Below the pieces are notes generated by a model. It saw only the letters and a program-made list of their open reading frames with translations, was not told the DNA's origin and did no database searches. A stretch of 64,000 bases of DNA, taken from sequence record OR670491.1. One strand, given 5' to 3'. Positions 18,928 to 45,696 of this stretch are shown here, piece after piece (the first letter of the stretch is position 1; every line of letters begins with the position of its first letter). The position numbers were made by a program, and so were the translations under genes.

Positions 18928-18954
18928 GGGTTGACTTCGGTCAACCCTTTTTTT
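18928..18954 (+). terminator. GGGTTGAC-TTCG-GTCAACCC terminator (cassette copy)
   Basis: Perfect 8-bp stem, cUUCGg loop, T7 tract. Confidence 0.9.
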
Positions 18955-18985
18955 ATGGGACAAATTCGTAAATGGTGATACAATG

Positions 18986-19480
18986 ATCTATGCACAACCA
19001 CAATGACAGTACTTGTACTGATAATCTTCCCTAATTCACTTGAAAACGTAAAGGATAGATGAGCTTTTCATTGTAGCGAACAGCAAAAGAAACCCGTTAG
19101 ATGTGGGCATAGTTTGAACCCCTCACGGCAATGCGGCTGTATAAAGAACCACGTTAGGATGGCTGGTGGTTCCTCGATAGACATATAAGGATAACACCTT
19201 ACGAATTATCTAAGGGAGAGTTATCAGATTTTGTACAATATAGTTGCGTCCAAAATTTGAGTACTCACATTAAGTATTTGATTGCATAGATACTTAATGA
19301 AGATACACTATGTTTAAAAGTGTAGACCGTCATATGAAACTGAAGTAGAGAGAAACAGGATGATCCGCTTTCGTGCTCTTTAAGAGTAATCTTCAATGCA
19401 ATAGCTCTGATACCATCAGCGTCAAATTCCCCTCTGTGTGGGGGGGGAAGAAAAATCCCTTTCTCAAATCCCGTCAATAT
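18986..19480 (+). ncRNA. candidate long structured non-coding RNA or regulatory region
   Basis: About 500 bp without a credible ORF; several stems (GAACCAC/GTGGTTC, CATTAAGTAT/ATACTTAATG, TTCCCCTC/GGGGGGAA). Confidence 0.35.
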
Positions 19481-19582
19481 TATAAAGTCCTTGACAGTTA
19501 TTATACATTCGCGTAAGATACGTAGTATCAGAAGCGAACAGACATCTCGAAGAGATGGATGATTAACATTAAGGAACATCTA

Positions 19583-22568
19583 ATGAATTCAACAATCTTC
19601 TTAGTAGCAGCTCTTTCAATGCAAAGCGGTGTACAAATCACTCCAATGAATTCCATGAATCAATGTATTTCTGTTCGTGATAGTACCTACGAACAGGTCA
19701 ATAAAAATATCTGGATGTCTATTGACAAAGAACAGATGTGGTGTTATAACAGTAATACAAAAGTTAAACTGTTTGTTGGTGAGAAAGAATAATAGTTGAC
19801 ACGTAAGAAGTTCTAGAGTATAATTTCTACATTGAGTACTGAACTAAATCATTAATTAATCAAGAGGGTTTATCATGCAAGTTATCGTTCTTATCGTTGG
19901 TATCGTACTGGGTGTTTATGGTCATTCCTGGATGCAGGAGAAGTTTCCTAATACTCGTCCAGACTTCTGTAGCACTACGGTGAGTTCTGAACTATCTAAA
20001 GATAGCAAAGATAGCATTGGTACTAAACTGGATAAAGTACTGAACGTAATTAACGAGTGAGGTAAGTTGTAATGTTTATTCCTAATAATTCTAAAATTGG
20101 AACACAAGTACAACTTCTAGAAGATGTAAGTACTTGCAGTGGTACTTTCACTAAAGGTCACATCTTAACTATCACAGGTGAAACCGAGCGTGGTTATGAT
20201 TTGGAAGATGCTGATGGTAATCGTATCTTAGAAGCAGGGTTTAGTCGTTTTGTTGAAGTGGATAGTACTGACCAGAAAGAAACAGAAGGTCATTGTTTTG
20301 ATTACCAAGAAGTCAACTCAAAATGTATCTGTGGTGAAATTTATAGTAAATGGGATTGACATAGTATAGAAATACTATATAATGTTTATATCAAATGAAA
20401 TTCACTTTAACCAACGATAGGAAAATATTATGTCTTTAACCAAAGAAGAACGTGACCTTATTGAAAAAGCAATCTGGTTTTATGCAAATGAAAGCCAGTG
20501 CAGTGATGAAGAAGCACGTGAACTGTGCAACCACCTTAGACAGAAACAAGAACTGAAAGTGTATCGTATACGTGCTGTGGATGATGGGGATCGTATTGTT
20601 CTAGCGGAAACAAAAGAAGAAGCAGAACAAATCTTCACTGATAATAACGAAAATCCACATTACATGGAAGAAGTCTGTGAAGTGAAAAAAGGTACTTATA
20701 TCGATTGACAGTACTGAATAATAGCAGTATAATGTTTATATCAAAGGGAATGCAGTGAAAGGAAAGACAGCATAATCGTACTCGTCACTGCGTTTCCACC
20801 CTTTTAAATTAAATGAGGAATTAATTATGTTTCAAACTAACACTCAAGGTTTTGTAATCATCGATCTGAATAAAAACAGCGGTCATTGGATGAAACCTAC
20901 TGACGCATGTATGCAGTTTGATTTCTTAGGTTATAAAATCAGTGTAAGCACTGGTGGTTCAGTACTGCGTGGTGGTTGTATCGTTGAACATCTCGTCACT
21001 GATCCTGAAGGCCGCGAATACGAAATCGCAGGTTCAGTACAAGATGCTATCATGTTCGTGTGTCAGCGTGAAATGAATGGCAGTAACAGCAACGCACTGA
21101 CAAACGCATTATCACAAGAAGTGGAGGTTCGTTAATGAAATATATTGTTTTAGTAGTAATGGCGTTTTTACTGAGTGCTTGTGATGCAAGTACGAAAGAC
21201 CGAACCAGTGAATTCCTTCTCCCTACTGAGTTAAAGGATGCTGGGTGTAAGATTTACCGTATGCGTCAGGAAGGTGATGGTGCAACTTTGTACACAGTTT
21301 ACTGCCCTAATGCTAATACCAGTACATCTTTCCGTACAGGAAAGACAACCGTACATGCATCTGTCATCAATGGTGAATAACATGGGATTGGACACAACTA
21401 AAGCCCAAGAACTACATAAGCGAGCAATGGATGAAGAGTTTTTAGCAAACATTCGCTATAAGATGGAGAAGCTATATCGTAGTGCTGAAATCTTAGAAGA
21501 CAAAAAACCTTCCATGACTACAAAATATTTCAATATCACTAACGACATTTGTTATAGTCCAGGTGAAATTTGGATTGAGTGGGAGTCTTGGACAGGGGAT
21601 ATTCTTCGTGTGCAAGGTTATTGTGTTCAATACGCTTTCGACGGTAATTCTAAATCACTGAAGGTACTATGTACTAATACGAATGATGTAGTGGATGTCA
21701 ACTTACATTGTATTAAATGGGTTGACTTTGGAGATGTAGATGAATAAAATTAAATTCATTGTACTTATGGTTCTCATGTGTGTTTCACTCACTGGGTGTG
21801 ATGAAGACCTTTCAGCTAAAACATTAGCTCGCTGGAACTGTAAGATGACTGGTGAGAAGTTCAAAACAGTCGAAAGTGTTTGTGTTGGTGAAGGTAGAAG
21901 CCGCTGCGACAAAATGGTTGACCATGAAGTGGAATTGTTTGTATATGATTGTCCAACAAAGGGTCGAGTACTGAGTAAAAGTGAGTTAATTTATAATTGA
22001 CAGTACACCACAAAAGGGATACAATGTATCCCTACTTTAATCGAAGAGGCTAACAAATGACTACTAATGAAATGCTGAAAGCAATCTGGGATAAAGGTTA
22101 TGAACTGAAAGTAACCAGTACTGAGATTCGCGTATTCAAGACTGAGTACTGTGAATATCTGGATTTAGATACTTATAACAGTATTGTCGTTGAGCAACAC
22201 AAAGGCAATGTTACTGAAAGTATTGATTCAGTACTTAAACGTTCTTTAGCTATCGTTGGTGCTTAAAATGAATTCAGATTTACAGAAGATGATTGGATTT
22301 GGTATTTCTGTGTTTTTTGTTATGATTTCTTTTGCAATTTTCATCCCTAAACTATTTCATTAAGAGGTGTATTATGATTTCTTTATATGTTGCTGTTATG
22401 CTCACTCATGGACAAATCGACCGCACCGTAGGTAAAGGTGTTTACACTACAGCAGATGAATGTTACACTGCTACTGCTTGGCCTCAAGATGAAGGTTCAA
22501 GTAATGAATTCAAATGTCTCAAAGTTAAAGGTGACTTTGTTAATCTTAAGGTTGTTGAGGCCAAATAA
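19583..22568 (+). other. run of small early genes behind several sigma-70 promoters
   Basis: 19583-19792, 19875-20060, 20072-20359, 20430-20708, 20827-21135, 21135-21380 (lipobox LLSAC), 21382-21747, 21740-22000 (lipobox SLTGC), 22057-22266, 22268-22363 (31-aa TM, not in track), 22374-22568; promoters include 19491-19519, 20705-20733 and about 21997-22025. Confidence 0.7.
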
Positions 22569-23068
22569 TGGATATAAACGATTTACTATCGATAGTTTCA
22601 AGACCATGTAAACACTCTTTTGATAGTCATTCCTTTAATTACACAGACAAGATTCAAGTAGTCACCGAGGAATGTTATGGAGTAACAACTATACAGATTT
22701 TGGATAACTATAGTAATAGTTTATGTTATATATACTTGACAAACCGCAGTGATGAACTTAAAAAAACCGAAATTGTATTATTTGGCAAACAGTGTTCAGA
22801 CACGCGTGATATTGAGATACTTTATTATCCTGGAAAATCTACACGCGAAATTGTTTATGACATGTACGCACTAGATGATAACTTTGTTATTGATTACAGT
22901 ACTGAAGAAAAGGTTTTTCAACAAAGTTTAGTACACAACTTTGTGTTGGGTGATCCTGGTATTCCAAAGATTTTTAAAATTCTCGATTCAATTACAGTGG
23001 ATTTTGAATTTCATATGTGCATACGTTCTGAATACTTGGATGATTTTGTGGAGATTTTCGGTTTATGA
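22568..23068 (+). CDS. hypothetical protein, FQxS-motif family
   Basis: STEEKVFQQSLVHN motif. Confidence 0.8.
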   Translation: MDINDLLSIVSRPCKHSFDSHSFNYTDKIQVVTEECYGVTTIQILDNYSNSLCYIYLTNRSDELKKTEIVLFGKQCSDTRDIEILYYPGKSTREIVYDMYALDDNFVIDYSTEEKVFQQSLVHNFVLGDPGIPKIFKILDSITVDFEFHMCIRSEYLDDFVEIFGL

Positions 23069-26018
23069 AACGATTTTACATCAACTATCTGTGTGTATCC
23101 GAATTCAATAACGTAAGAGGTCACACAATCGAAAAGCAATCTATGGATGTATATGTTCGTGCTGAAAGTCCTACACATGCATTGTTTAAACTTATCAGTG
23201 AAGTCACCAAGTACAATACTCCCAAAACCCAACGCTACATTGGTGCTTTGTATGATATCAATGAAGTTCCAGGGTGTGATATATAAAAAGTACTTGACTT
23301 GGATTAGAAATCTATATATAATATATACATATTAATCGAAATGGAAAATAAATCATGTTGGCTAATCTTCAGTACTTTGTAACTTCTCCGTGGGATGAAC
23401 GTGGTGTTGAACTGAACCACAAAGAAACAAGTTTTGATGACATTGGTGTAGGTACATACATCTCTGCAAATTACGACCGTAACCATCCATTTTGGGAAAA
23501 GTTTAAAGATAATGAAAGTAATCGTGTTATGTCATTATTTCAACTTAAACAACCAGGGATTGTAGCTGGTTATAATGAAGAAGACATGATCAATGTATTC
23601 ACTAACTATAAGGTAGTTGAAGAATTCCCGTGGATTAATAAACACAACGGCAATGCTTATAGTTCAGATGATTATCGTGAAATGGTCACAAATGATGATG
23701 CAATTACGTTACCAAGTGGACGTCCAGTTCCATCATCAACAAATTGTATGTCTTCTTATGGTACGGCTGATAATCTTCAGCAAATCCTGAAGAAGTATAA
23801 GCGTGTTCTGGATTCAGAAGACGAGTTAGTACTGTGTATTCATCCTGTGTACAAATCCGAACAACCAGAAAGTGGTGGCTGGCGTTGGCATAAGAATGGT
23901 ACATATATTGGTAACAAAAGAAGTAAACGTGGATATGAATACCTGGCTGATGAACCTGATATTGAAGTAGTAATCGGCTTTAAATTTCTTAAAGTACAGA
24001 GGAAAGACAATGCTTTATCTAATTCTTAGTTTTGTGGTTGCAATCGTTTTTATGTTTTACCCAACCTTCGTAGCACTGGTTGTACAGAAAAGCTACCGTA
24101 CTATTGGCATCATCATGGTACTGAATATTGCACTTGCTCTAGTGTCTATGCTTGTAGTAGTATCATCGCTGGCGTGGGTTGATATCATTACATTTTGGTT
24201 ATTTGTGTTTTCTTATTTGATGATTGTTGAAGTCAAACCTATTGACTTATAAGTTACTTCTGATATAATAACTTTACATTAACTGATATGAGGTATTAAA
24301 ATGTTAGCACTTATTTCTTCTATTCCGGCTATGGTACTCGTTTGGATTATTGTTTTTTATATGTTTTCATCTGCTAAAACGAAAGAAAAGATGGAAGACT
24401 TGTTCTTGTTGGATACAACTGTAGTTGAAGTATTCTTCTGGGTAGTAGTCATCGGAACTGTTGTAATGATTCTGAACTTTGTATTACCACTTGGAATCGC
24501 TCACAACATTCTGTCCCTTGTTGAATATTTTATTGCAATCATTTGGTTCATGCAATGTCTGTTTGCTGGTAAGGTTGGAATCTGGTTTACGTTGGTGAAA
24601 GAAAAGATTAGTACGCTTACTAAAACTAAGTAATATTCTCAAAAATGTTAAATACTTCTGTACAAAGTAATGTTCAGAAGTATTTTTACTTTTATTGAGG
24701 GTATCATGAAATATGTAATAATAACTATAACTTTTTTAATTGGATTGATTTCTAGTTCAGCCAATGCAGTAGTTGGTGAAGAACTAGATTGTATGGGGAA
24801 TGATGGGATATGGCATGTACTTACAAATGACCCACAAAATGGAACTAATATTGTAGTTGACGGTGATGTTTATAGGTTCAGAAACGAAAGTACAATAGGT
24901 AACAAAAAAGTCTCGACATATAAAAATGATGCTGATATAATAGCTAACGTAATCTTGATTGTAGATCCAAAGACAAGGGATGGAGATATCTATATTGTAA
25001 TATATAGAGATTCTTCGAATAAACGCGATGAGGATATAGATAAGCTTAATCTACATTGCGAATTTTAAACGAGGTTCTTATGTTAAACACGGTTCTTCAG
25101 TACATCTTAAGCATTCCATTTATTCTTAGCAGTCTTGTATCTGTAGCATCAATACTTTTTAGTATCTTTTCAGTAATGTACTGTGTATATACTAAAAAAT
25201 ATACATTCATCAATAAGGTAAACTCCTTATTTGAAACTGATAGTGTACCGTATTGTGTGTGGTCTTTTAGTGCAGCGGGAATTTTTGCAACATTCCTTCT
25301 TTACTGCCTGGATATTATTGACAGAAGTTATGTTCTAATTAGCATTGGGGTAGGATTATATTCATCGTGTTGGTACTTGATTTATGTTGTAGACTCGTGG
25401 TATACTGCATATCAGCAGTACACGATTAATAAACAATATTCCAAGTGAGGATATGACCATGAAAGTATTTTTATTCTTTATCTGTATGATTTTTTGTGCT
25501 GTACAAGCTCATGCGGAACCACTGGCAAAGATGTTTTGTTCAGAGGGTGAAGTACAGCACATCTATCAAGGTGATTCTGATGACCACGATATCATTTACA
25601 TTGATGGATCGATTTATAACTTTGTAAAAGAACATACAGTTGGTGATGTAAGTTTTACCGAGTACGCATCGAATGTAGATAAGAATGAGTTAGCGTTTAT
25701 CCAGGTTAACTTAGAAGAAGATGCTGATGAAGTACAAGATGTTAAATTGGTTCTAATGCGTAAAGGTGCAGGTACTACAGAGTTTGGTGGCTCCTGTGTG
25801 TTTGATGCATAGTCGGGAGATAAAATATGTTGATTTATCAAGGTGATGGTATTCGTGTATTGCAGCATCCATTCCTTCAAGTCTTCGATGTACAGAAGTT
25901 TCAAGAAGGTGATGATCCAAGAACATATGGACGTAAACATGATTACTTCACAGTAAAGCAATGTACAAGTATTGAAGAAGTTCGTTCATTAGTGAAAGAA
26001 CTAGAAAATAATGGTTGA
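23065..26018 (+). other. small hypothetical, membrane and exported proteins
   Basis: 23065-23286, 24010-24252, 24301-24633, 24706-25068 (signal peptide), 25080-25448 (multi-TM), 25453-25812 (signal peptide), 25827-26018. Confidence 0.65.
23355..24029 (+). CDS. conserved phage protein (GGWRWHKxGxYIG type)
   Basis: SYGTADNLQQI...QPESGGWRWHKNGTYIG motif, recognised from memory as recurrent in myophages; function unknown. Confidence 0.6.
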   Translation: MLANLQYFVTSPWDERGVELNHKETSFDDIGVGTYISANYDRNHPFWEKFKDNESNRVMSLFQLKQPGIVAGYNEEDMINVFTNYKVVEEFPWINKHNGNAYSSDDYREMVTNDDAITLPSGRPVPSSTNCMSSYGTADNLQQILKKYKRVLDSEDELVLCIHPVYKSEQPESGGWRWHKNGTYIGNKRSKRGYEYLADEPDIEVVIGFKFLKVQRKDNALSNS

Positions 26019-26043
26019 CTTCGGTCAACCTTTTTTGTATACT
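26013..26043 (+). promoter_or_regulatory. fused terminator-promoter cassette
   Basis: GGTTGAC-TTCG-GTCAACC-T6 with TTGACT-17-TATACT. Confidence 0.8.
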
Positions 26044-26073
26044 TAATTCATATTAATTGATGAGGGTATTGCG

Positions 26074-26520
26074 ATGCTGGTATATCGTTTTGAATTAGGC
26101 TTTAGTTATGTAGAAGAAAACTTATATCCAGTGAGATCAATTGGACCGTTCGCACGTTACTATTCACAATACAGTACTGACAACGGGTTTGACCGTTTGC
26201 GTTTAGGAACACCACACGAATTGCAACCTGAACCAGAAAAGGATGGCATTCATTGCATCAAGCACGGTTGGGCTTTTGGCTGTGCATCAATTAAAGACCT
26301 TATTCGTTTCTTCGCTAATGACTTAGGTCGTTTGCATCGTTCCGGCTTTCAGGTTTTTGTATATGAAGTTCCTGATAATCATGTTGATGTTGGTGGTCAC
26401 CAGGTTCAGTACTACGTAGGTAGTGCTAATTTAGTACGCATCATGGGTGTACGTGAAATGAAGCAAGAATACCGCCAGATGAAAGAGGTTGAAGATGCAA
26501 AAAACGCTGTACACGTTTAA
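26074..26520 (+). CDS. conserved phage protein, possible ADP-ribosyltransferase fold
   Basis: VYR...PEPEKDG...FGCAS...GFQVFVYEV...GGHQV pattern. Confidence 0.35.
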   Translation: MLVYRFELGFSYVEENLYPVRSIGPFARYYSQYSTDNGFDRLRLGTPHELQPEPEKDGIHCIKHGWAFGCASIKDLIRFFANDLGRLHRSGFQVFVYEVPDNHVDVGGHQVQYYVGSANLVRIMGVREMKQEYRQMKEVEDAKNAVHV

Positions 26521-28001
26521 GAAGTGGTACACATTCACTTTACCTGGTGACAAATACTTTGACCAACAGGATGATGAATATTACAAAAAAGAAACTCTCA
26601 AATTACTGAAGATGGCTAAACAAGCCCTTTCTGTATACAACAGTTCTTTAAACGTAGCCTATGAGCATTACCGAATCACGGCAAAGATTGATGAAGAAGA
26701 TGGTGAACTTTCATTCTTTGAATACGATATTGTATACTTTGGTTACACCGATGATGAAGACCCAATCAACGTTGATAAGATACGACTTGACCTCACCGCT
26801 ATATCTGTTATACTTAAACAACTGGCTGAGATGTGTGGCTTAATTGAAACATAATAGAGGAACACTATGAAACTTAAAATTGAATACAGTGGTTTCTGTA
26901 TGCGTAAAAATACTGAATTTGTAAACCGCACTAAAGGTTCAGAACTCTTTTTTAAAGAGATGCAAATTCCTTATGTAATTGAGACAGTTGGAGATCGTGA
27001 AGTACTGTCCTATGAAGAATACACTAAAGTAGATGTACCGTGGTATTCTGAGCACATGTATATGGACATGGCAGAACGTTACAATTGCGAATTTATTATT
27101 AAACCAAAAACTATCACAATCAAATTTAACTAAGGTAAAATAAAATGATCAGTGCTTCAGTGAATGCCAATATTGTTTCAGATGTAAATTTAATTAAAGA
27201 ATGCACAGATAATGATACTCGTGATCTTTATATTAACAACGTCATTGAGCAATATGGAAACATGGGTGTTATGGAGTTCGTCCGCTTAAACGGTGAACTA
27301 ATCAAGAATAAGATTCGTCTTAAACTTGCGGTTCATCCAAAGGCGTGGGCATTCACAATGAAGTACGCAGAAGATATGTTAGAGCTACGCCGCAGTACTG
27401 TTTACGAACGTTTACATAATGGCACATTAGAGGGTTAATATGAAAAAGATTGCATTGGGATTGGCTTTTCTTGCATTGAGTGCTTCTTCGTTTGCAGGGC
27501 AAGCAGAATATGATCAACCACGTTCTGTGAAGTGTGTAGATTTGCGTGGGGGAATTATATCTTATGATGAACATGAAGTACGACGTGCTAAAATTGATAG
27601 TGATGGAACAACGGTAATACTGAAGGATGGAAAATTCATTCAATTCAGTCCAGCAGTTCAATGTATCACGGTTTTGCAAGAATAAAAGCTTTATTGATCT
27701 ATATCAATTTTCATTACCAAAATGTAAATATTAATGAGTAAAATATATTTTCATGGAGGTTTATATGGAAGTTGTTATTATAATATGTGCATTTATTTCT
27801 TTGATAGTAATGTTATCTCCAACTTTTATTGCACACAAATTGAAGAACAATAATGCTGAAGCAATAACATACGTTAACATTTGTTGTGTAATGACATATG
27901 GAATACTGTTGTTCTTTACTGAATTTACTTTTATTCCTATAGTTGTATGTTCATCAATGTTCATATGGTTATTCTTACTGTATGAATCTATTAAAAAATA
28001 A
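26495..28001 (+). other. five hypothetical CDS
   Basis: 26495-26854, 26867-27133, 27145-27438, 27440-27685 (signal peptide), 27753-28001 (TM). Confidence 0.7.
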
Positions 28002-28052
28002 TCAATAACTGGGTTGACCGAAGTCAACCCTTTGTTGTATAGTGAGGTTCTT

Positions 28053-28625: not shown

Positions 28626-28637
28626 ATTGGAGAGAAA

Positions 28638-29081: not shown

Positions 29082-29139
29082 ACAAATTTCAGTTAAGTGA
29101 TATAATTACAATGAGTTAATAAGAACAGAACTCATTTGT

Positions 29140-29147
29140 TATAAATA
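29140..29147 (+). promoter_or_regulatory. T4-type late promoter
   Basis: TATAAATA 33 bp upstream of 29181. Confidence 0.65.
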
Positions 29148-29180
29148 CAAATGTAATTTATCTCTTTAAGGAGTATTGAA

Positions 29181-29564: not shown

Positions 29565-29666
29565 ACACTAAGGTTGACTTCGGTCAGCATTTTTTATTGA
29601 TTTAGTATTGACACTATTAAAAGAAATGAATATAATATCAATCAAGACGTAGATAAACCTAACTTA

Positions 29667-30068
29667 ATGAGGATGTGTATGAAAATTATTATTGCGTTGT
29701 TAGTATGTATATCATTTCAAGTATTATCTGCCCCACAATTAGTATGTACAATTACCCGAACTGATGGACAGACTATGACATTCAATACGAATGAATTGTT
29801 TGGAAGATCAAGTACTGAAACGGAAACCACATATCAATATCACCGACTTGATGTTGGTAATAATGTATCTACGCAAACAGACATGACCATCGATAAAATC
29901 ACACTTAAGGGTCGAATTATTGCTGAGAGAAGTGGTGTTCCAGCTTTATCGGCAACAGTAGACTGCAACTAAGGAACAGGTATGTATTTATATATCGCAA
30001 TTTCAAGTATTGTCTTTGTTGTTATCGTTACTGGATGGTTTGGGTATCTAATGTTAAGTACAAAATAG
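29667..30068 (+). other. exported protein (29667-29972) and 28-aa TM microprotein (29982-30068)
   Basis: Signal peptide with Cys pair; MYLYIAISSIVFVVIVTGWFGYLMLSTK is not in the track. Confidence 0.55.
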
Positions 30069-30097
30069 GTTGACTTCGGTCAGCCTTTTCTTTATAC

Positions 30098-30105
30098 TAT
30101 AAATA
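30098..30105 (+). promoter_or_regulatory. T4-type late promoter
   Basis: TATAAATA directly after a terminator cassette (30067-30086). Confidence 0.65.
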
Positions 30106-30151
30106 TAGTCATAGAGAATAAACCAATATGAAATCTATGGAGAGAAATCAA

Positions 30152-31972: not shown

Positions 31973-31981
31973 TAAAGAAAA

Positions 31982-32014
31982 GGGTTGACTTCGGTCAGCC
32001 CTTTTTGCTATAAT
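31982..32014 (+). promoter_or_regulatory. fused terminator-promoter cassette
   Basis: GGGTTGAC-TTCG-GTCAGCCC-T5-GC-TATAAT (18-bp spacer, extended -10 TGC). Confidence 0.85.
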
Positions 32015-32042
32015 CATTTCATCAACTCAAGAGGAAACAAAA

Positions 32043-32786
32043 ATGAAAAAGACTATTTTAAGCGTAATCGGTGCAGTACTGTTCATGGTAACTTCAGTTG
32101 CTTCTGCTGCAACAGTAGAAGAGATCTTTAATAACAACCTACCTACTCAAGAAGAGATGGGTATTAAGAAGTGTGACCTTTCCCGTTACATCATTTTGGG
32201 ATCACAACTGGTTCCTGATGGTAAGGTTAAAAATCGTGTTAATCTGGTTGAAGATGGTAACACCTTCAGTTTTGAATATGGCGTAGCACCAACCTCCGGT
32301 TCTATGGATAACGTTGATGAAAACACTGGTTCCACCTGGAGTACTAACAAAGGTGATGTGTTCCATCGTATGCGTGAAGGTGGTAAACTGAAATATGTTT
32401 ACGAAAGCCCATTCATCAAACGCGTGTATATTATGACCAACTGCCATTGACAGATACATTTCAGTACTGTATAATACCTACATCAACCAGAGGATATGAC
32501 AATGAATGTATTAGCCAATCTTGTAGGACAGATGCGTTATAACGAAATCATCACTGATGTTTCTGAACTCACTGAATCAAAAAGCTACATCCACTTAGAT
32601 GAACTAATCATCAAGTACGGAGAGATTGGTGTCAATGAGCTTATTGTTTTTATGATTGAAACTCACAAGTTGAAGTACTTTAAGCTGAACTCTGAACCGT
32701 ATGCAGAACCTAATCTTTATTACAGTTATTACTTGAAGTACAAAGATGAATTCAATAGTATTTTTAGTAAACTATTACTTGCATAG
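32043..32786 (+). other. exported protein (32043-32450) and hypothetical protein (32496-32786)
   Basis: Signal peptide ending ASA; promoter TTGACA-17-TATAAT at 32447-32475 with TCAGTACTG in the spacer. Confidence 0.7.
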
Positions 32787-32795
32787 GATAACAAT

Positions 32796-34178
32796 ATGAA
32801 TTTTGAATTGATTAATAAAATATCATTCTGTTTCATGTGTTTAATACAATTGTATTTGACACTTGGATATATACTTAGATTTTTTAAGTACAAAAGTATA
32901 TATAAACGCTTTTATGATGATGCACCTATCTTCGATTTACTGTTCATCGGTAATGCGTTTTCTATAGGAGAAATTCTGGTTGATGGCATTGACCCTGCTC
33001 AACCACAGTTAGTTAGTATCTTACTTGGACTAATTGTATCATGTGTTGGTATATTCCCATTGGTGTGGTCATTCTTTCACTTCGTTGGGTGGCTTGATAA
33101 AATACGTAATAATTTACCGGAGCGATAATGCAAACAGTAAACACATTAAGTTTTATCATTTGTACTGTGTCTGTATTTTATATGGTACTGTGTTATGTTT
33201 TGTGGTTTTTCAAATTTGAAAGCATTTTAGAACGTGTTTATAGGCTGGACTTAGAAGATGAGATTGGTATAACAGTACTCACTGTTCTAGGTTTTGTCTG
33301 TGGTGCGTCTATCCTGTTGGATATGTACATGAAACTACCCATTGATGCCCCACATCCTCCAGTAATCACCAGTTCAATTGTAATTGGTATTGTAGGTTTC
33401 CAGGGATTGATTAGTCTGTTTTCCTCAATAGCTACATATAGAGATAAGCTACCAAAGAGGTAAAAATGTCGGATAAGTACTACTTTACGGGTAAGAAATG
33501 TGAACCATACGTTTTGGATTACAAGGAGCAGGAACAACCTAAACCGAAAAAGAAAGCGAAGAAGGAAGTAGTGAAGAAACAAAAACCACTGGTTAAAGGA
33601 TTGAAACTTAAACCTTTCCAAAAACTGGACTTTGACACTTACAGAAAGATTTATTTGGATTTGACGTGTAACATTAGCTTTGATGTTAATGCGATGAACA
33701 GGAAGTATAACCTGAAGGGTAGTTTCAATTTTTATTATGACTTAAAGAATGATGATCTTGAATCTTACCATGAGTGGTATAACGTTATGAATAACCACGT
33801 CGATGACAATAACCCATAGGTGAATATATGATTGAAATTATCGGAACGATCAGTTTTGTGTCATGTGTATTGTTCTGCACTTACATGATAATTGGACACA
33901 TTTTGTATTTCTTCAATTACATTACTGTGTTTAAAAAATTCTACTTCGAAAAGAGTGGATTTTTGTTTTACATTTGTGATTTTTTCACATGGGTGTCAAT
34001 GGGTGCAGTTATAATGGATATTATGTTTAGTGAAGATGTTTCTAAGGTAGGGTTCGGAATGACGCTTCTACCATTTGCACTATTCGTTACCCTTGTAGCT
34101 TTGTTCTTGATAGTGTTATCAAGTAATTTTATATCAGAGAAATTAAACAAGGCTAGAGAAAACTTCCCAATGCGATAA
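32796..34178 (+). other. three 3-TM family membrane proteins and one soluble protein
   Basis: 32796-33128, 33128-33463 and 33828-34178 share three hydrophobic segments and a basic R..(L/F)P.R tail; 33466-33819 is basic and soluble. Confidence 0.7.
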
Positions 34179-34189
34179 AGGAGTATACT

Positions 34190-35944
34190 ATGTTCGCACT
34201 ACGTAATAAAAAGACTCACCAAATCGTGGATTATGAATGGGTTTGCTATTACAATACTGGCAGCACTGATATGATTCTGTGCCATGATGGTGAAGAACCA
34301 TTTGTAACCAAACGTCGTGAAACACTCGAAGAGATCATCGAAGAATACAATACCAATGTAAATGCTGAAAATGGTCCTTATGGCGATGGCCTACGTGTAG
34401 AGTTACCAGATGCGTATGAAACTGGTAACATGGATTCTTACGAGATTGTAGAACTGGTGGTTAAGTAATGCGTGTAATGTATAAAGTAACTGAGCTAAAC
34501 AAGCGTCTGCTTAAGATTTCTATGTTTGAGGATAAAGAATCTCTCTATAACTTTAAACGTGCTGTAGAGGCTGCTACGCATCTACAGAAGCTTAAGGATA
34601 AAGGATGTATCATTCTTGAAAACAATTCAGTACTGGAAGGTAACTTCAGTGTAGCCTTTGATGAAGCAGAAGATGGAACACTTTCTATGCCACGTTTGGG
34701 TACTGGTGACATGACAGTGTGGATTGGCTTTACTATGGGAAACAAGAAAGGAACTGTATACGTTGATGAAGAAGAGTTGAAAGATAGCTTCAAAAACTTA
34801 TCGTACATCGAACCACAATACTCTCATAAACTAAGTTTATTTTGAGTTGACAATAAAGTTCAGTACTGTATAATGTTTATCAAGGGGATGAACTTCTCAT
34901 CCCCACAATCGAGGAATTGTCATGATTACTTTTAAGAAAACTGCTAACCACATCCATGAGATCTACATTAACGGTCACAAAGCTGGCCTTCTTCGTTTAC
35001 TCGCCCATCATCCGAATATTACCGTATCTGATAATGAACCTAAAGATTGGCGTGTATTTTTCTTTGGAAAGTACAGTGATTTTCAAGTATCAAACCTGAA
35101 GAACATTCGTTCAGTATGCACGTTAACTGAAATTAAAGAAAAGTTAACCAAAGCATTGAAAACTAATCCAGATAGTGTTCTTCCACCTGATAACTTTGTA
35201 GAGAAAGGATATGCCTTAGCTCATTTCAAAGATGGTACTATTCAATCTATCAGTACTGAATATGAATATCAATGGACTGAGTACTTCACTTATGGATCGC
35301 GTAATACATTGATGGCTTCACGTAGTAAATTGGAAGAAGTACTGACTCGTATGAATGAACGCGAGCGTCAATTTTATGACAAACCAGAAATGTGGAGTTC
35401 AACTTACATTGACCGTATTGACTATGTTATTATGACTCCAATATTTGACACTGCTTACTATGATTCTTTGAAATAAGGATAACTTATATGAAACTACGTA
35501 CTCGTAATCGACTGATGGATGCACTGTACCATGAACAGCTTTCACTGAATGAAGTGAAGCGTCAGTTAATGTACACATATCTGTTACCCGCTCGCATTGC
35601 AAAACAACGTGCTAAAGAATTGCTGAAAGAAGCAATCGAGTACTGGGAATCTGATTCGTACTAATTGTCACGTTAATTAAGTGAGGCGATAAATGAAAAT
35701 TTTATTAGTTCTAATACTACTAATTGTTTTACCATTTACGTTAGTATCCCCTGAACTTGCATGGAATGTGTTTGTGTACTTACTATGTACTATTGTAGTA
35801 AATGGTATCTTGTTCTTAGTTCTATTCATAAATGGAATAGGACACGGTGGAGGATGGACCAGAACTGCTGATATTGTACATAAAACCACTATGTCTTTAT
35901 TTGTAGTGTGGAATTTATTCTGGACTTGGTTTGTGTTCTTCTAA
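34190..35944 (+). other. five hypothetical CDS
   Basis: 34190-34468, 34468-34845, 34922-35476, 35488-35664 (58 aa, not in track), 35693-35944 (TM); promoter at 34847-34874 with leader hairpin 34884-34904. Confidence 0.7.
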
Positions 35945-35953
35945 TTAAAAAAT

Positions 35954-36325
35954 ATGAATATAGATTTGAAAGGTGCAACCCGAACTGTCATACTCATTGG
36001 GGAATATGCTATCAAGATTCCAACCTTTAAAAGTTGGAAGCTATTCTTAACAGGGATGATAGCTAACCTCAATGAACGTTCTTGGATGCAGTACTCCAAA
36101 CGTAGTGACAGTGGTATATGTCCTACTTTGTGGTCATCTATGACTGGTCTGATAACAGTACAGAAGCGATGTAAACCAGTACATCACCGAGGATTGTTTT
36201 GGGTGGAGTTGTGTGCGTTAGCATCGAAATCAGAGTTGAGTACTGACTTCTTTTATTCAGATGCGAAGCCAGAAAACTTTGGGTATCTGAATGGTAAGTT
36301 AGTTAAACTTGATTACGGAGATTAA
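35954..36325 (+). CDS. minimal protein-kinase-like protein
   Basis: KGATRTV (Gly loop), YAIKIP (Lys), NLNE (alpha-C Glu), DAKPENFG (catalytic loop) and KLDYG (DFG equivalent) in 123 aa. Confidence 0.7.
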   Translation: MNIDLKGATRTVILIGEYAIKIPTFKSWKLFLTGMIANLNERSWMQYSKRSDSGICPTLWSSMTGLITVQKRCKPVHHRGLFWVELCALASKSELSTDFFYSDAKPENFGYLNGKLVKLDYGD

Positions 36326-36326
36326 T

Positions 36327-38000
36327 ATGTACGCATTATATAATAAAGAAAAGAAACGATTCGCTAAGGTTGAAATTTTTATTGATACATTTGATATGTT
36401 AGAGTATTGTATCATCACTGATACTTATGAAGCATTGTATTACGTTCTTGATGACGTATCAGTACTGCAACGATTACTTGAGCGTTCAAAAAGTACATGC
36501 CAGGGTATCCATGATGGTTCATCTTATGAAACACCTGATTGTCCACACGGTCAACTCGATGGGTATGAGATTGTTAAGTTGGGAATTATTGAGTAAAAGG
36601 TATTGACACAGTTCCCATTTAACAGTATTATGTATGTACACCAACTAATGAGGAATCTGAAATGGCATCTTTAACTGAAATCACTGAACTTAATCCACTG
36701 GCAATTAGTACTGTTCAACGCACCAAGACGTTTTACTTCCGTCCAGCAGAAGGTTGGAAGCGTGGCGTGAATGGTGATTATCGTGAACTGGAAGATAATC
36801 TCGTGGGACGTGTTAATTCAGAACTTAATGTTTATGAAGGTGTTAAGGTTGTACGTTCACATTCTCGTTATTTTGAATACTACATTGAGTCTTCATCAGT
36901 GAATGAAAACAGTTCATTTTCTGTTGACAATACTGATACACTGCGTAATGCAGTATCTATTCTATGTAACATTGCAGAAGAGATGGGATTAACTATCGTA
37001 ACGATTGGTGAGTTAGCATGATTAAAACTTTTATTCTTACAATGGTATTTGGTTCTTATGGTGCTGGTGTGCACCAGTAACTAAGAAATAAAAAAAGGTT
37101 GACAGTAGTCATCCCTTTCTATATAATTAATACATCTTAAGCGAACGAGGATTTACAAATGAATGCAACTCTGAATGGTAAAAATATCAACGTAGCTACT
37201 ATTGCTGCAATTCTGCTAAACAATCGTGAAGTAACTATTGACTTACCACTTACAACTAAAACTGGTATTCTCATTACACGAAATGAATCACACTTCGTTG
37301 GTTACAAAAAGCAAGATGTTATTTCCGTTTGTTTTTATGAATCAGACGGCATCGACGACGAAGTAACTAGTACTGAATACTTCAATACCGACATGATTGA
37401 ATCAGCATCTAAAGCTGCACTTGAGCGTCATGCAAGTGAAGATCCAACTGAAGCATCCAACTTCAGTGTTTCATTTGAAAACACTTTCATCAAAATTGAT
37501 GAAAATGTTATTGATTTTGAAATGGCTGATATCAGTCCGATGGATCTCAATGGCCTTCCAACTGTTAAAGGATAATACAAATGAAATGTCCAATCTGTGA
37601 AAAACAATTGAATGTTGGATCAATTCCTTTCCTTTGGATGGATCGCTACGGTGATAAATGCGTTGCCAGGACTGAATGCTGTGGTCATGCAGTAACAATG
37701 CGTAAGGTTTCAACCTATACAGCAGACCCGTATGTTGGTGAGCGAAGCGAAGATGATTGGGGTACAGAGTTTACTCCTTTGAAGTCTAAAATCCAAGCAC
37801 AAGTAAACGATGAACTTTATGATTCAGTACTGATGCACTTGAAGAACAACGAACTGAGAGAAGCACTTGATGTTATTCGTTCTATTAAGAACCCTTTAAC
37901 AGCAGCTTGGGTGACTCATCAAGTACTGGAATATTTGGATACACCTAGCCAAAAACAAACGCGTAACTGGCTCATTAACGCATTGTATAGTGGAGTATAA
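36327..38000 (+). other. four hypothetical CDS
   Basis: 36327-36596, 36662-37021, 37159-37575, 37581-38000 (CPIC...CCGH zinc-ribbon-like). Confidence 0.7.
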
Positions 38001-38046
38001 GAGTAGTTGTAATCGAAGCTGTAATTTATATGTTGAGGTAGTTCAA

Positions 38047-38139
38047 ATGAAAGTTATGTTTGTATACAACGAATTTGAAGAATGCAAAGGTTGTGGTTTG
38101 CCGAACTATCTTTGTTCCTGTCATGGTGAGTATTTCTGA
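38047..38139 (+). CDS. 30-aa Cys-rich microprotein
   Basis: MKVMFVYNEFEECKGCGLPNYLCSCHGEYF with GAGGT RBS; not in track. Confidence 0.55.
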   Translation: MKVMFVYNEFEECKGCGLPNYLCSCHGEYF

Positions 38140-38145
38140 AATAAA

Positions 38146-38178
38146 GGGTTGACTTCGGTCAGCCCTTTTTGCTATAAT
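38146..38178 (+). promoter_or_regulatory. fused terminator-promoter cassette
   Basis: Identical to 31982-32014. Confidence 0.85.
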
Positions 38179-38206
38179 ACTTTCATCAAGACGAGAGGAT
38201 GAAAAC

Positions 38207-38722
38207 ATGACACGCATTAACTTAGTACACGTTAAAGAACTTGCTGACCAACATCTGATGGCTGAATACCGTGAACTCCCACGCGTGTTTGGTGCTGTAC
38301 AAAAACATGTTCAAGCACGTAAACGTGTCCGTGATTTCAAAATTAACAGTACTTACCTGTTAGGTTCAGGTCATGTAACATTCTTCTACGACAAGTTACT
38401 TTACTTACAGAAGCGACATATTGATATTGTCAACGAATGTTTGCGTCGTGGTATGAAGATTCAAAACACTGAAGTAAACGATATCAGTGGGTTCCCTGCT
38501 GAGTTTTGTAATGATTACGTACCATCGGAGTCAGAGATTAAAACATCGCGTGAGCGTTTGATTGAGAAGCTCCAGATGAAGCCTAAGTGGTATAAATTTA
38601 CTGATGTTGAATGTCCACAGTACGTTAAAGATATGCAGAACGTAAGTAGTAAGATCGAATCTAGTACTGATATGTTCGACGAAATTGAAGAACAAATCAA
38701 AGATGAAATGAATAATTATTAA
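38207..38722 (+). CDS. denV: pyrimidine-dimer DNA glycosylase (endonuclease V)
   Basis: MTRINL...[18 protein letters not shown]...[13 protein letters not shown] matches T4 DenV, including catalytic Thr2 and Glu23 equivalents; acidic C-terminal extension. Confidence 0.95.
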
Positions 38723-38760
38723 AGGAAAGGATTGACTTCGGTCACACAAAGGAACATAAC

Positions 38761-39329
38761 ATGTTATTACTATATTCAAAGCGTTTCTGGATTTCTTTCA
38801 TTGTACTTTCGCTAATCGGCTTCGGTGTGAGTATAATCTTTTCGTGGGATGAATTGGGTACATGGTATTATGAAGTTCCGTGGTACATGAAGATAGCTCC
38901 TTGTTACGCGGCATTGTTCGTGTCCTTCCTTATTGTTGTCTTCAGTGAGGATTAGTTGATGTAGTGGCTGATAAATCACATGAATTACTAAGGGTACGTT
39001 GGCCTCATCTTAATGAGAAGAAATAAACATTTTAAAGGGTTGACTTCTGTCAGCCCTTTTTGCTATAATTATTTCATTAACTAAAGAGGTAATACATGAA
39101 ACTATCTTTTATACGTTTAGCAGAATTCTTCGGTACTGATATCATTACTTTACAACAAATTGCAGACAATACTTCATTAAGTACACAAGAAGTACTTGAC
39201 TTGGATGTAATTAAGTGCGATAATACTTCCATCGATTACAAAGAAGGTCTTGTCGAAAAAGATAAGATTCAGGCTAAGATTAATGGTGCTGGACGGGTTC
39301 AGTACTGGAAAGGAGTTTTAAGTAAATGA
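38761..39329 (+). other. two small CDS (38761-38955, 2-TM; 39096-39329)
   Basis: ORF track; cassette copy at 39037-39069 precedes the second. Confidence 0.65.
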
Positions 39330-40750
39330 AAATTTATATTGATAAATTTGGAACGACTTATGAATATTATGATTATACACATTATAATTCATATATACAA
39401 AAAAATCATAACCAAATGTCACCTTATTTGCATTATGAAGATTTAATGGAACTATTCTCTAAAAATGTAAATTCTATTAAATTTATTGGTTTTAAAGATG
39501 CAACATGGAAAAGTTCACATACGCATGTGTATTTTGAATATGATAATATGGTATATGAACATTCAATATCAAATATCAAAACAAAATTCGCTGATCATAG
39601 ACATAAACCAGGTAGAATATGTAGAACCTTGGAACAAATTATAAATGAGTCCATTTATATATTTAAAAAATATGATAAATTTAATTTTCATAGCAGTGCA
39701 TCATTTAATGGAGCACGAACTATAATCAATTATACAATTGAAGGACGTGAAAGAATATTTTCTATATCATTCAATTCATTAATAAAAGATTTTAAAGGGG
39801 GAAGCCCATGTTATTCATATGAAGAAGTAGAAAATATATCTATAAAAAAATTAAATGAACATAATTTGAGATTTATCTCAATTAGTAAATTTAATGGTGT
39901 GTTTAGTTGTATTGAATATGAACAACCAACACAGAAAGGAAAAAAATATGTTGATTTTAATATATTAATCTATAATGAATGGAAAGGTAATCTACCGAAT
40001 ATAACTAATGAAGAGGTGAATAATCGAATTTCAGAAAAAATGAAAAAACTAAATATCAATGAATATGAAATTGTAGAATATAACAGTACTAGGAGCATGG
40101 TTGAATATACAGTTGATGATATTTCATATACAACTAGTTACGATAAGATTATGCATCCAACTTGGAAAGGTAATCCAAGATATACAAAAGAAAGAATAAT
40201 AAAATTGTCGAAAAAATATTGCAAGGGTAAAAAATTTCAATTTAATAAAATAATTGGTAATGTTAAAGGAATTAATACTATCATTGAATTAGAACTTGAA
40301 AATGGTATGTTTATATATCCAAAATTTATACAATTAAAAGGAGGTTCTGACTTTAATACATCCACTGATGGTAAGATTTTAACAGAAATAATTTATCCTT
40401 TGTTCGACAATTATATCACACAAAAACGTTTTGAAAATTGTAGAAATCCTGAAACTGGATACTTGTTGCCATATGATTTGTATGTTCCAGAATTTAATTT
40501 ATTATTAGAAAAAGATGGAGTGCAACATTACAATCCAACAGCATATTTTAATAAAACATATGAATCATATTTGAAATTGAGAGAGAGAGATGAATTTAAA
40601 AACAAATATGCCATATCAAATGGTTATAATTTCATGCGAATAGCAGATTATGAAGATCATGAAAAAATATTGAAATCTTTCCTTAAACTCATTGAAGAGA
40701 ATCCAGGAAAGCAAATCGTGCAGATCTATGGTGAAGTACAAATTATCTAA
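39326..40750 (+). mobile_element. putative homing endonuclease (C-terminal Vsr/DUF559-like nuclease)
   Basis: 474 aa, visibly more AT-rich than its neighbours; C-terminal LPYDLYVPEFNLLLEKDGVQHY; internal repeats ending in KG(G/N)xP. Confidence 0.7.
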
Positions 40751-40757
40751 AACAAAA

Positions 40758-40790
40758 GGGTTGACACTAGTCAGCCCTTTTTGCTATAAT
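40758..40790 (+). promoter_or_regulatory. fused terminator-promoter cassette
   Basis: GGGTTGAC-ACTA-GTCAGCCC-T5-GC-TATAAT. Confidence 0.85.
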
Positions 40791-40818
40791 CATTTCATCA
40801 ACTCAAGAGGATAAAGAC

Positions 40819-41592: not shown

Positions 41593-41651
41593 TACTTGAC
41601 AGTACTACCAATGTACAGTACAATACCTGTATTGAAAAGCGAGGAAACGAT

Positions 41652-45668: not shown

Positions 45669-45671
45669 AAA

Positions 45672-45690
45672 GCCAGTACAAAGTACTGGC
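45672..45690. terminator. bidirectional terminator
   Basis: GCCAGTAC-AAA-GTACTGGC flanked by A and T tracts between convergent blocks. Confidence 0.8.
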
Positions 45691-45696
45691 TTTATT

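Follow-up and report, generated by a model that had tools for sequence, protein, structure and literature searches.

Introduction

PeSLs, first described in T4-like myoviruses, combine a promoter with a stem-loop and fall into five subclasses, in one of which the stem-loop lies over the -35 box (Arbiol et al. 2010, PMC2839356). In coliphages RB49 and phi1 these sigma-70 promoter and stem-loop elements are repeated between genes of hyperplastic regions and flank indels, and the RB49 stems are mostly poly-G/poly-C and usually found in the stretch that separates the -35 box from the -10 box, or over the -10 box. Promoter and terminator activities were demonstrated by experiment for the PeSLs of the RB49 group, as were mini-circles for those of RB49/phi1 (PMC2839356). 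The PeSLs of nt-1/KVP40 are composed of A3-4, GGG, a 5' arm beginning with TTG, a loop that is often TTCG, a 3' arm, CCC and a T-run, followed by a box reading TATTAT or TATAAT, then leader, ribosome-binding site and ATG, and are tied to indels between close relatives (Comeau, Arbiol and Krisch 2014, PMC4122927). In bacteria, promoter-coupled terminators are recognized by two mapped positions, an RNA 3' end and, at most 35 bp downstream of it, a transcription start, and terminators with a stem that forms the -35 box of the next promoter were demonstrated to function and called common, in a study that mentions neither phages nor PeSLs (Fletcher et al. 2026, bioRxiv 10.64898/2026.08.19.745784). 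Thus, a -35 box inside a stem is not new, since it defines a listed PeSL subclass, is found in the nt-1 PeSLs and is common in bacteria according to the 2026 preprint.

Here we describe repeated cassettes in a 64,000-nt stretch of record OR670491.1 (the window). The window is from Escherichia phage vB_EcoM_JNE01 (JNE01), a jumbo phage comparable to 121Q and RaK2, with a 355-kb genome and a recorded taxonomy of Caudoviricetes; Asteriusvirus. We estimate a probability of roughly 80% that the cassettes are PeSL-type composite terminator-promoter elements in the early hyperplastic region of this Asteriusvirus jumbo phage. PeSLs are a known kind of element and their occurrence in the Asteriusvirus group is a real new instance; a literature search found no published description of PeSLs in this group of jumbo phages.

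The PeSL assignment, proposed in a first-pass annotation of the window, fits every feature that can be tested on sequence alone, and the design is that of the nt-1 PeSLs (PMC4122927). The cassettes occupy gaps that separate genes of one strand in a hyperplastic region. They have an AT-rich upstream tract and sigma-70-like -35 and -10 boxes spaced by about 17 nt, carry a stable stem-loop in one of the five promoter-relative positions (here over the -35 box), lead into a ribosome-binding site and start codon, and are conserved over tens of bases. Close relatives differ by insertions, deletions and replacements that are associated with them. JNE01 is not a T4-like myovirus, which concerns the place of first description and not a property of the element. 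The cassettes share the layout of the nt-1/KVP40 PeSLs given above and differ from them in a stem of 8 bp with TTGAC, nearer to consensus than their TTGC, and in their location in an Asteriusvirus jumbo phage outside Straboviridae. They also resemble the RB49/phi1 PeSLs, but their stems differ from the poly-G/poly-C type in composition and position, and the promoter and terminator activities demonstrated for those elements are here predicted from sequence. As in the bacterial promoter-coupled terminators, the DNA of the stem-loop also serves as the -35 box, the T-tract abuts the -10 box, tandem genes lie on either side, and stop and start are about 10 bp apart, a spacing that in JNE01 is predicted. 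By contrast to the bacterial elements, which are of diverse sequence, one per locus and in cellular genomes, those of JNE01 form one sequence family that is repeated many times and common to several phages.

Insertion of lambdoid phage morons is thought to be illegitimate, not homology-guided. Morons resemble the JNE01 cassettes in forming autonomous promoter-gene-terminator units whose gain or loss leaves adjacent genes undisturbed, and differ in having no repeated shared boundary sequence (see also the discussion in PMC2839356).

Results

The pattern (A)AAGGGTTGAC-N4-GTCARCCC-T-run was found in 10 good copies and one decayed copy at 18.9-40.8 kb, between same-strand early genes (Table 1). 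On the plus strand of the window, the exact pattern GGGTTGAC-N3-8-GTCARCCC was detected at six sites (0.00 expected); the looser GGTTGACNNNNGTCARCC, with up to two mismatches, was detected in the window at 10 sites (0.4 expected). These 10 sites, strand-consistent and far above chance, coincide with 10 of the 11 coordinates of the first-pass annotation, and the repeat is thus real. The estimate of about 11 copies held for 10 and failed for 38731, a decayed remnant that is likewise decayed in its 121Q ortholog. When the whole genome (355,583 bp) was scanned for TTGAC-N3-8-GTCAR, 14 plus-strand matches were found, with nine in the 18.9-40.8 kb cluster (the 37097 copy falls outside this count, as its 3' arm reads GTCAT) and five as variant cassette copies 24-40 kb beyond it. 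The three minus-strand matches were perfectly palindromic copies read in reverse. Every cassette lies between small plus-strand genes. Coverage of the 25-kb region was 75% in one close relative and 24-44%, in 7-14 pieces, in the other relatives listed. Judged from its sequence, the region is early and hyperplastic, with the cassettes intergenic between tandem genes of early type.

Table 1. Cassettes and related features of the JNE01 window (positions are those of the window).
Feature	Coordinates	Strand	Details
Sigma-70-family phage sigma factor gene	17958..18920	+	ortholog positions in Turkey5, UE-S1, 121Q, SHEFM2K and vB_Ec-M-J annotated as RNA polymerase sigma factor
Hairpin GGGTTGAC-TTCG-GTCAACCC and T7	18928..18954	+	-16.1 kcal/mol; no -10 in register
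Two hairpin-less consensus promoters (20356-20383, 20705-20733) around gene 20430-20708	20356..20733	+	gene missing in Turkey5
Cassette, 7-bp hairpin, TTCG loop, T6, -10 TATACT at 17-nt spacer, leader, ATG at 26074	26013..26073	+	
Hairpin, perfectly palindromic stem, CGAA loop, -10 TATAGT at 18-nt spacer	28011..28052	+	breakpoint 28043
Hairpin (29572-29589) and T6, then separate consensus promoter TTGACA-17-TATAAT (29608-29636)	29572..29636	+	breakpoints 29588, 29595, 29622
Hairpin, weak -10 TATACT, T4-late-type TATAAATA at 30098-30105	30067..30151	+	upstream of virion structural protein gene
Full cassette GGGTTGAC-TTCG-GTCAGCCC, T5, TGC-TATAAT at 18-nt spacer, leader CATTTCATCAACTCAAGAGGA, ATG at 32043	31982..32042	+	breakpoints 31965, 32006-32014
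1.5-kb segment flanked by AAAGGTATTGAC (left) and AAAGGGTTGAC (right)	36598..38142	+	missing at site in Turkey5, 121Q, UE-S1, SHEFM2K and CMSTMSU
Cassette, weakened hairpin (one stem mismatch, AGTA loop, no clean T-run), consensus promoter TTGACA-17-TATAAT	37097..37158	+	
Full cassette upstream of endonuclease V (denV) gene	38146..38206	+	homology starts 38139-38143 in six relatives
Decayed cassette remnant ATTGACTTCGGTCA	38731..38760	+	4-bp stem, no T-run; sense hairpin -3.2 kcal/mol
Full cassette, TTCT loop	39037..39095	+	upstream of 77-aa gene and HNH or homing-endonuclease-like gene; breakpoints 39018, 39033
Full cassette, ACTA loop, leader as at 31982	40758..40818	+	breakpoints 40748-40754, 40808

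The repeated signal is about 60 bases long and consists, in order, of an A-rich upstream tract (an A-run in most copies), a hairpin with the -35 box, a T-run as spacer, a -10 box, a ribosome-binding site and ATG. In six copies the hairpin begins 6-9 nt past the upstream stop codon (the first hairpin 7 nt past that of the sigma factor gene), and the -10 box ends 26-31 nt before ATG in six copies, with GAGG in the leader. The stem overlaps the -35 box, and hairpin energies are -7 to -16 kcal/mol. The proposed register, with TTGACW as -35 box, the T-run as spacer and (TGC)TATAAT as -10 box, was found in eight of 10 copies, in which a spacer of 17-18 nt separates TTGACW from a TATAAT-like hexamer with matches at 5 or 6 of 6 positions; it was not found at 18928 and 29572. 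Four copies (31982, 38146, 39037 and 40758) have the extended TGC-TATAAT, always at 18-nt spacing and with an unvarying leader and ribosome-binding site. Also borne out were the varying loops on persisting stems (TTCG in six copies; CGAA, AGTA, TTCT and ACTA in one each; pair-preserving stem changes) and the sequence shared downstream of the 31982 and 40758 hairpins, a 21-nt leader.

The copies are not uniform. The 18928 hairpin looks like a terminator only, and its ortholog in 121Q and SHEFM2K is GGTTGGC-TTAT-GCCAACC, a double change that keeps pairing and loses the -35 box. At 29572 the consensus promoter is separate, 36 nt downstream, in an unfused arrangement. At 28011 the -10 box ends only 9 nt from ATG, such that the transcript would be without a ribosome-binding site, and a promoter role is doubtful. 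These three copies are without a usable coupled promoter, and 37097 has a weak hairpin; for three of the 11 copies listed, the dual function described is unlikely.

Gene-module exchange at the cassettes, as earlier proposed, is supported by comparison to relatives. Sharp homology breakpoints in BLAST alignments against six relatives formed 30 clusters, and 11 of these were in cassette footprints, which make up 3.2% of the bases (p ~1e-9). The indels of relatives were, as anticipated, bounded by cassettes: a breakpoint was detected at 8/10 cassette junctions compared to 1/47 plain junctions (p ~2e-7). Breakpoints coincide with cassettes, and the cassettes are conserved across relatives. Individual events had the expected signatures, including a single cassette in one phage versus two flanking cassettes in another; at the 31982 position, 121Q has two cassettes and extra genes. 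At the 30067 site, breakpoints were found at 30048-30059 in five relatives, and the 37097 cassette is inside the 1.5-kb segment missing from the five relatives compared at the site. In public-run contigs, divergence begins exactly at the edges of cassettes, metagenome contig ends cluster at 38142-38147 and 38175-38178 (38146 cassette), and a joint related to the 36598..38142 segment is present in a public run. The public-run joints are the gene orders of relatives and do not represent mini-circles.

An account to which we assign an appreciable but minority likelihood is that the cassettes are real signals that are passive in genome change, with only unit-boundary indels viable or with free-standing homing endonuclease genes driving the exchanges. 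HNH or homing endonuclease genes adjoin several variable junctions, 13/30 breakpoints are inside genes, and promoter-only junctions hold breakpoints too (4/10, not significantly different from the 8/10 of cassette junctions; p = 0.17). By contrast, when only non-genic bases were considered, the enrichment remained, with 11/17 breakpoints in cassettes compared to 24% expected (p = 4e-4). Breakpoints on the left precede the hairpin by 6-17 nt, and those on the right coincide with where the hairpin or the -10 box ends, a pattern predicted for partners that both carry the cassette. Also against passivity, the Turkey5 deletion of gene 20430-20708 is a crossover in the 18-nt TATAATGTTTATATCAAA common to both hairpin-less promoters, and AAAGG..TTGAC repeats flank the 1.5-kb segment. 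The enrichment could partly be due to selection, with only indels at unit boundaries surviving, and could partly be an artefact of BLAST alignments snapping to conserved islands. We infer that recombination, and not selection alone, places the breakpoints. Since the same ~35-60 nt is repeated at many junctions, the cassettes would provide short homology patches, by which gene modules may be deleted, inserted, replaced or moved.

The arrangement of parts suggests how a cassette would act on transcription. The upstream transcript would form the RNA hairpin GGGUUGAC-UUCG-GUCAGCCC (about -16 kcal/mol), which with the short U-run would terminate or attenuate upstream transcription near the -10 box. 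The U-run is short (5 T, then GC), so termination may be partial. The same DNA would serve as a sigma-70 promoter, with TTGACW of the 5' arm as -35 box, (TGC)TATAAT as -10 box, and the loop, 3' arm and T-run as the 17-18 nt spacer. Restart is predicted ~11-14 nt past the point of termination and would yield a leader of ~20 nt with a ribosome-binding site, rendering every gene or small gene group an insulated unit. Actual termination and actual initiation at the cassettes are predictions from these features; the one RNA run examined (raw reads) had 0 reads on the stretch. The UE-S1 record annotates the corresponding hairpins as terminators, and that of Yersinia phage fHe-Yen9-03 has -35 and -10 boxes annotated over its cassette match.

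It is improbable that the hairpins have a single role, as terminators or 3'-end stabilisers with a promoter likeness derived from AT-rich intergenic sequence, or as promoters in which the hairpin is neutral. Such a role would suit the 18928 and 29572 copies and the many nearby consensus promoters without a hairpin; these are of equal strength, which indicates that fusion of promoter and hairpin is optional. However, the TTGAC of the 5' arm is near-invariant while the 3' arm takes up the changes, and in the four TGC-TATAAT copies the 18-nt spacing, the leader and the ribosome-binding site are constant. Where the -10 box is missing, TTGAC drifts yet pairing is kept, as in the 121Q counterpart of 18928, and different genera retain the hairpin, with changes that preserve pairing.

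At stem pair 4, 89 of 126 unique cassettes have U.G and 35 have U-A; four have stem pair 7 changed from A-U to G-C, and 75 have a UUCG loop. The U.G of pair 4 is an A/C mismatch on the opposite strand, and predicted folding is about -16 kcal/mol for the sense hairpin compared to about -11 kcal/mol for the antisense. Pairing is intact in 96.6% of cells of a 22-sequence set picked so that variant copies were represented, and both sides are changed in two of the pairs. Taken together, the sense-only wobble pairs, UUCG loops and compensatory changes argue for an RNA terminator hairpin and against a DNA palindrome; structural selection acts on the sense-strand RNA. Marginally less probable still is that the palindrome is an operator, bound as DNA by a dimeric regulator of phage or host and overlapping the early -35 box (e.g., for early shut-off), with the RNA hairpin incidental: the stem is a perfect palindrome in three window copies, some bacterial terminator palindromes are also regulator binding sites (bioRxiv 10.64898/2026.08.19.745784) and the phage's own sigma factor gene is just upstream, but most copies are not DNA palindromes (3' arm G and not A, 89 vs 35, tolerated only as sense-RNA U.G), the observed changes keep RNA pairing and not half-site symmetry, the sense-strand loop is strongly biased to UUCG or UCCG, and the T-run is always 3' of the hairpin on the sense strand. 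The prevailing U.G wobble may have been selected to keep the cassette one-directional, as hairpin and -35 box are both weakened by it on the antisense strand.

Discussion

Near-identical cassettes are found across RaK2-like, KVP40-like and Aeromonas 65 phages. Every sampled RaK2-like jumbo phage has the 30-nt core AAGGGTTGACTTCGGTCAGCCCTTTTTGCTAT, as do KVP40-like Vibrio phages, Aeromonas phage 65 and several 118-162 kb contigs; it was not found in E. coli genomes. A 20-mer of the -10 box and leader, TATTATATCTACATCGAAAC, is common to the KVP40-like phage VH7D and RaK2-like contigs. We tentatively suggest that the cassette could be one regulatory linker common to several phage families, beyond JNE01. 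If it is spread or maintained by exchange, and not by convergence, it would provide a common docking site by which unrelated large phages trade ready-to-express genes.

Cassette number and anatomy

The window comprises bases 248,001-312,000 of Escherichia phage vB_EcoM_JNE01 (OR670491.1, 355,583 bp; genus Asteriusvirus according to the public record), a jumbo myovirus of the same group as 121Q, PBECO4 and RaK2. The cassettes, hairpins with the -35 box (TTGACW) in the 5' arm followed by a T-run and a TATAAT-like -10 hexamer, sit in a series of small genes on the + strand, mostly of unknown function, that begins directly after a phage sigma-factor gene (17958-18920). A strict cassette pattern was found at 6 + strand sites in the window (0 expected) and a looser pattern at 10 sites (0.4 expected), all of which are among the 11 hairpin starts of the first-pass annotation. 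Ten of the roughly 11 copies claimed there were thus recovered, while the copy at 38731 was found to be a decayed remnant. The whole 355,583-bp genome was then assembled from the public record and searched for TTGAC-N3-8-GTCAR. This pattern had 14 + strand matches, nine of them in the window's cluster; five variant copies (GGGATTGAC-TCCG-GTCAGTCCC) lie 24-40 kb beyond it. The - strand matches were all accounted for by three perfectly palindromic copies read in reverse.

In six copies, the start of the hairpin lies 6-9 nt past the upstream stop codon. TTGACW takes up stem positions 4-9, and a spacer of 17-18 nt is made up of what remains of the loop, the 3' arm (8 nt) and the T-run. Beyond the spacer, 8 of 10 copies have a TATAAT-like hexamer, with an extended -10 (TGC-TATAAT) in four, such that the proposed arrangement of a -35 box in the 5' arm, the U tract as spacer and (TGC)TATAAT was confirmed to be in register. 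An ATG is located 26-31 nt past the -10 in six copies, with GAGG between. The copies at 18928, 28011, 29572 and 30067 deviate from this layout, as listed in the table. The downstream sequence earlier noted as shared by the copies at 31982 and 40758 proved to be the whole leader, which is identical in both. Many consensus sigma-70 promoters of the region have no such hairpin; in one promoter of this type, at 21997, a stem overlies the -10 box.

Positions of putative terminator-promoter cassettes and related hairpins (hairpin starts in the window unless stated otherwise)
Feature	Position	Strand	Remark
Cassette	18928	+	no -10 in register
Cassette	26013
Cassette	28011	+	-10 too near ATG to take in ribosome-binding site
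Cassette	29572	+	no -10 in register; consensus promoter 36 nt downstream
Cassette	30067	+	hairpin followed by TATAAATA, the T4 late-promoter motif; adjoins virion structural protein gene downstream
Cassette	31982
Cassette	37097		GTCAT, so missed by TTGAC-N3-8-GTCAR
Cassette	38146
Cassette	38731		remnant
Cassette	39037
Cassette	40758
Second-family hairpins	45673, 46950, 48205, 49621, 54621	-	variants near 50843, 52105, 53365
Variant cassettes	record 312559, 319043, 323061, 326336, 329086		just past window

RNA hairpin versus DNA palindrome

A set of 126 unique cassettes was compiled from the window, six relatives and IMG/VR; a few of its entries are perfectly palindromic copies read in reverse. 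In this set, the 5' arm was near-fixed (GGGTTGAC or AGGTTGAC). By contrast, the 3' arm base opposite the first T of TTGAC was G in 89 and A in 35 cassettes; this G forms a U.G wobble in the sense RNA compared to an A/C mismatch on the opposite strand. Other one-sided changes of the 3' arm (GTCGGCC and GTTAGCC) likewise preserve pairing by wobble. The loop was UUCG in 75 of the 126, and a distal variant cassette had a UCCG loop with a paired A/T insertion in its stem. When folded, hairpins of the GTCAGCCC type had energies of about -16 kcal/mol for the sense strand compared to about -11 for the antisense strand.

Pairing was further examined in 22 sequences, picked so as to take in variant copies, and was found in 96.6% of cells, with two pairs changed on both sides; when the partner was slid by 1-3 columns, pairing fell to only 12-55%. 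The copy after the sigma-factor gene needs no promoter, and in 121Q and SHEFM2K it has lost TTGAC and kept pairing through a double change (TTGAC/GTCAA to TTGGC/GCCAA), as a dual constraint predicts. A DNA operator, with the palindrome read as double-stranded DNA, was rejected because the wobble pairs are strand-asymmetric and the loop sequences biased. Taken together, the evidence favours a cassette hairpin that acts as sense-strand RNA rather than as a DNA palindrome. The repeated cassette is real and was read correctly from the start, as a probable terminator hairpin that would double as the -35 box of the next promoter; how efficiently it stops transcription, and whether and when its promoter is used, are inferred. 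Of 24 public runs, the only one with raw RNA reads gave 0 reads over 36500-42400.

Distribution among phages

Five Asteriusvirus relatives were found to carry 6-10 cassette copies each in the syntenic region. The hairpins are annotated as terminators in the UE-S1 record, and -35 and -10 signals are marked over a cassette match in that of Yersinia phage fHe-Yen9-03. A 23-nt exact scan of IMG/VR detected 29 loci, on contigs assigned to RaK2, GAP32, CBB, Serratia BF and 121Q and on related contigs, as well as on contigs assigned to Aeromonas phage 65 (235,229 bp) and Vibrio phage VH7D (246,964 bp) and on contigs of 118-162 kb. A 20-mer comprising the -10 plus leader (TATTATATCTACATCGAAAC) is common to VH7D and RaK2-like contigs. 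By use of a 43-nt cassette query, 92 phage records were matched (33 Vibrio, 29 Escherichia, 9 Klebsiella, 7 Erwinia, 6 Salmonella and others fewer). The same query detected no copy in E. coli genomes, and a host origin of the cassette was rejected on this basis.

Gene-content breakpoints and exchange events

The region is a mosaic among relatives: over 25 kb, the listed relatives share 24-44% in 7-14 pieces, with the exception of the close relative Turkey5 (75%). Sharp homology ends, determined by local BLAST against six relatives (of which the CMSTMSU record, with its fragmented ORFs, is less trusted), formed 30 breakpoint clusters. Cassette footprints (from -30 to +62 nt relative to where the hairpin starts) cover 3.2% of bases and held 11 of these 30 (binomial p about 1e-9), consistent with the expectation of the first-pass annotation that indels are bounded by cassettes. 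When only non-genic breakpoints were considered, 11 of 17 were in cassettes compared to 24% expected (p = 4e-4). A breakpoint was present in 8 of 10 junctions with a cassette, 4 of 10 with a promoter only and 1 of 47 with neither. Homology that begins at a cassette sets in 6-17 nt upstream of the hairpin, and homology that ends at one stops at the hairpin end or the -10 end, as expected if the cassette itself is common to both genomes. The cassettes help to account for the mosaic state of the region.

Individual exchange events were also resolved. The gene at 20430-20708 is missing from Turkey5, where the sole promoter is composed of parts of both promoters that flank the gene here, with the crossover within a shared TATAATGTTTATATCAAA. 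The segment 36598-38142, with AAAGG(TA/G)TTGAC on its flanks, is absent from the same site in five relatives (Turkey5, 121Q, UE-S1, SHEFM2K and CMSTMSU); in 121Q, a gene of this segment lies downstream of denV and was therefore displaced. The single cassette at 31982 corresponds to two cassettes enclosing three extra genes in 121Q, and 121Q has other sequence in place of the interval between hairpins 29572 and 30067 (edges 29588 and 30055). In a public run with related phages, contig ends cluster at 38142-38147 and 38175-38178, which are both cassette edges. A "goes back" joint in this run was rejected as evidence of an excised circle, as it fits the 121Q-like gene order of a relative. The breakpoint result fits recombination at cassettes and selection for boundary-respecting indels alike and does not separate them; solely the crossover signatures speak for recombination at cassettes.

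Other repeats and signals

Several further features were observed. The 630 nt at 18948-19582, 3' of the sigma-factor terminator, have a doubtful - strand ORF as their sole ORF, are aligned with relatives at an identity equal to that of flanking genes and have promoter-like sites of their own; a repeat region is annotated at the corresponding place of the UE-S1 record. Five tRNA genes are located in 1165-1423 and 5660-5812, and an Rfam scan of the window detected nothing but tRNAs.

The hexamer AGTACT, often within CAGTACTG, was counted 1000 times over the 355-kb genome, compared to about 119 expected, and is the most enriched hexamer family (8-10 fold; e.g., window 16421-45668). Its copies are mainly within genes, in all three frames. 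The excess was also found in 121Q, UE-S1, RaK2, GAP32, CBB and Serratia BF but not in nt-1, VH7D or Aeromonas 65, and a literature search on it found no report. AGTACT resembles a DNA-level signal spread over the whole genome in RaK2-like phages.

A second hairpin family (45669-54638, - strand) reads (A)AAGCCAGTACT-loop-AGTACTGGC, a T/C-run and then GGCTAAATATAGTATAATGAATAAAGGAG, upstream of - strand genes, and looks like another cassette that combines terminator and promoter, here with a TAAATA motif of late type. The 1 kb at 62144-63163 is without genes, has tandem ACGGCTAA-type repeats, several CAGTACTG copies and GCACCCGGTGGGC-type hairpins, and could be an origin, packaging site or terminal-repeat boundary. 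Past it (window 63164-64000 onward; record 311-335 kb), very small genes make up another early-type region. Most of them have upstream AAAGTACTTGCA-N17-(GCG)TATAATGTTTTACATC, a hairpin of the form GGGGAA..TTCCCC that lies in the 5' leader, and a ribosome-binding site, a layout corresponding to the subclass of PeSLs (promoter-early stem-loops) with the stem downstream of the -10. In the variant cassettes just past the window, the hairpin is followed by TATTAT and, instead of a gene, by a conserved stretch of about 50 nt (CATTGAGAGATA..GCCCACAGGGTGC..) that may be a repeated small RNA; this arrangement is also present in IMG/VR contigs.

Relation to known systems and significance

PeSLs were first defined in phages RB49 and phi1, where promoter activity, terminator activity and mini-circles were demonstrated and five stem positions were listed, one of them over the -35 (Arbiol et al. 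2010, PMC2839356). Later work added nt-1 and KVP40 and gave the stem as A3-4 G3-loop-C3 T3-4 (Comeau et al. 2014, PMC4122927). In nt-1 bases 50,000-57,500, we found PeSLs such as AAAAGGGTTGCTTCGGCAGCCCTTTTTTGTTATTCT, which share their design with the vB_EcoM_JNE01 cassettes. In bacteria, the DNA of the stem frequently serves as the -35 as well, with the T-tract supporting the -10. Transcripts end and begin at points separated by about 10 bp, and termination is modulated by the coupled promoter; phages are not mentioned in that study (Fletcher et al., 2026 preprint, bioRxiv 10.64898/2026.08.19.745784). The fused terminator-promoter design is thus not new in itself. Literature on Asteriusvirus, 121Q, PBECO4, phAPEC6, UE-S1 and RaK2 was searched, and no description of a PeSL, promoter or terminator was found.

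The additions made here are modest: the phage group, a quantitative breakpoint test, the strand-asymmetric wobble pair and a cassette that is nearly identical from one phage family to another. PeSL-type cassettes are extended from T4-like phages to RaK2/121Q jumbo phages, with a quantitative breakpoint test of a kind that the original PeSL papers did not report, and the phage PeSL literature is tied to recent work showing frequent fusion of terminators with promoters in bacteria. The cassettes would be compact natural insulator parts, and they would mark the unit boundaries for more than 50 unknown early genes.
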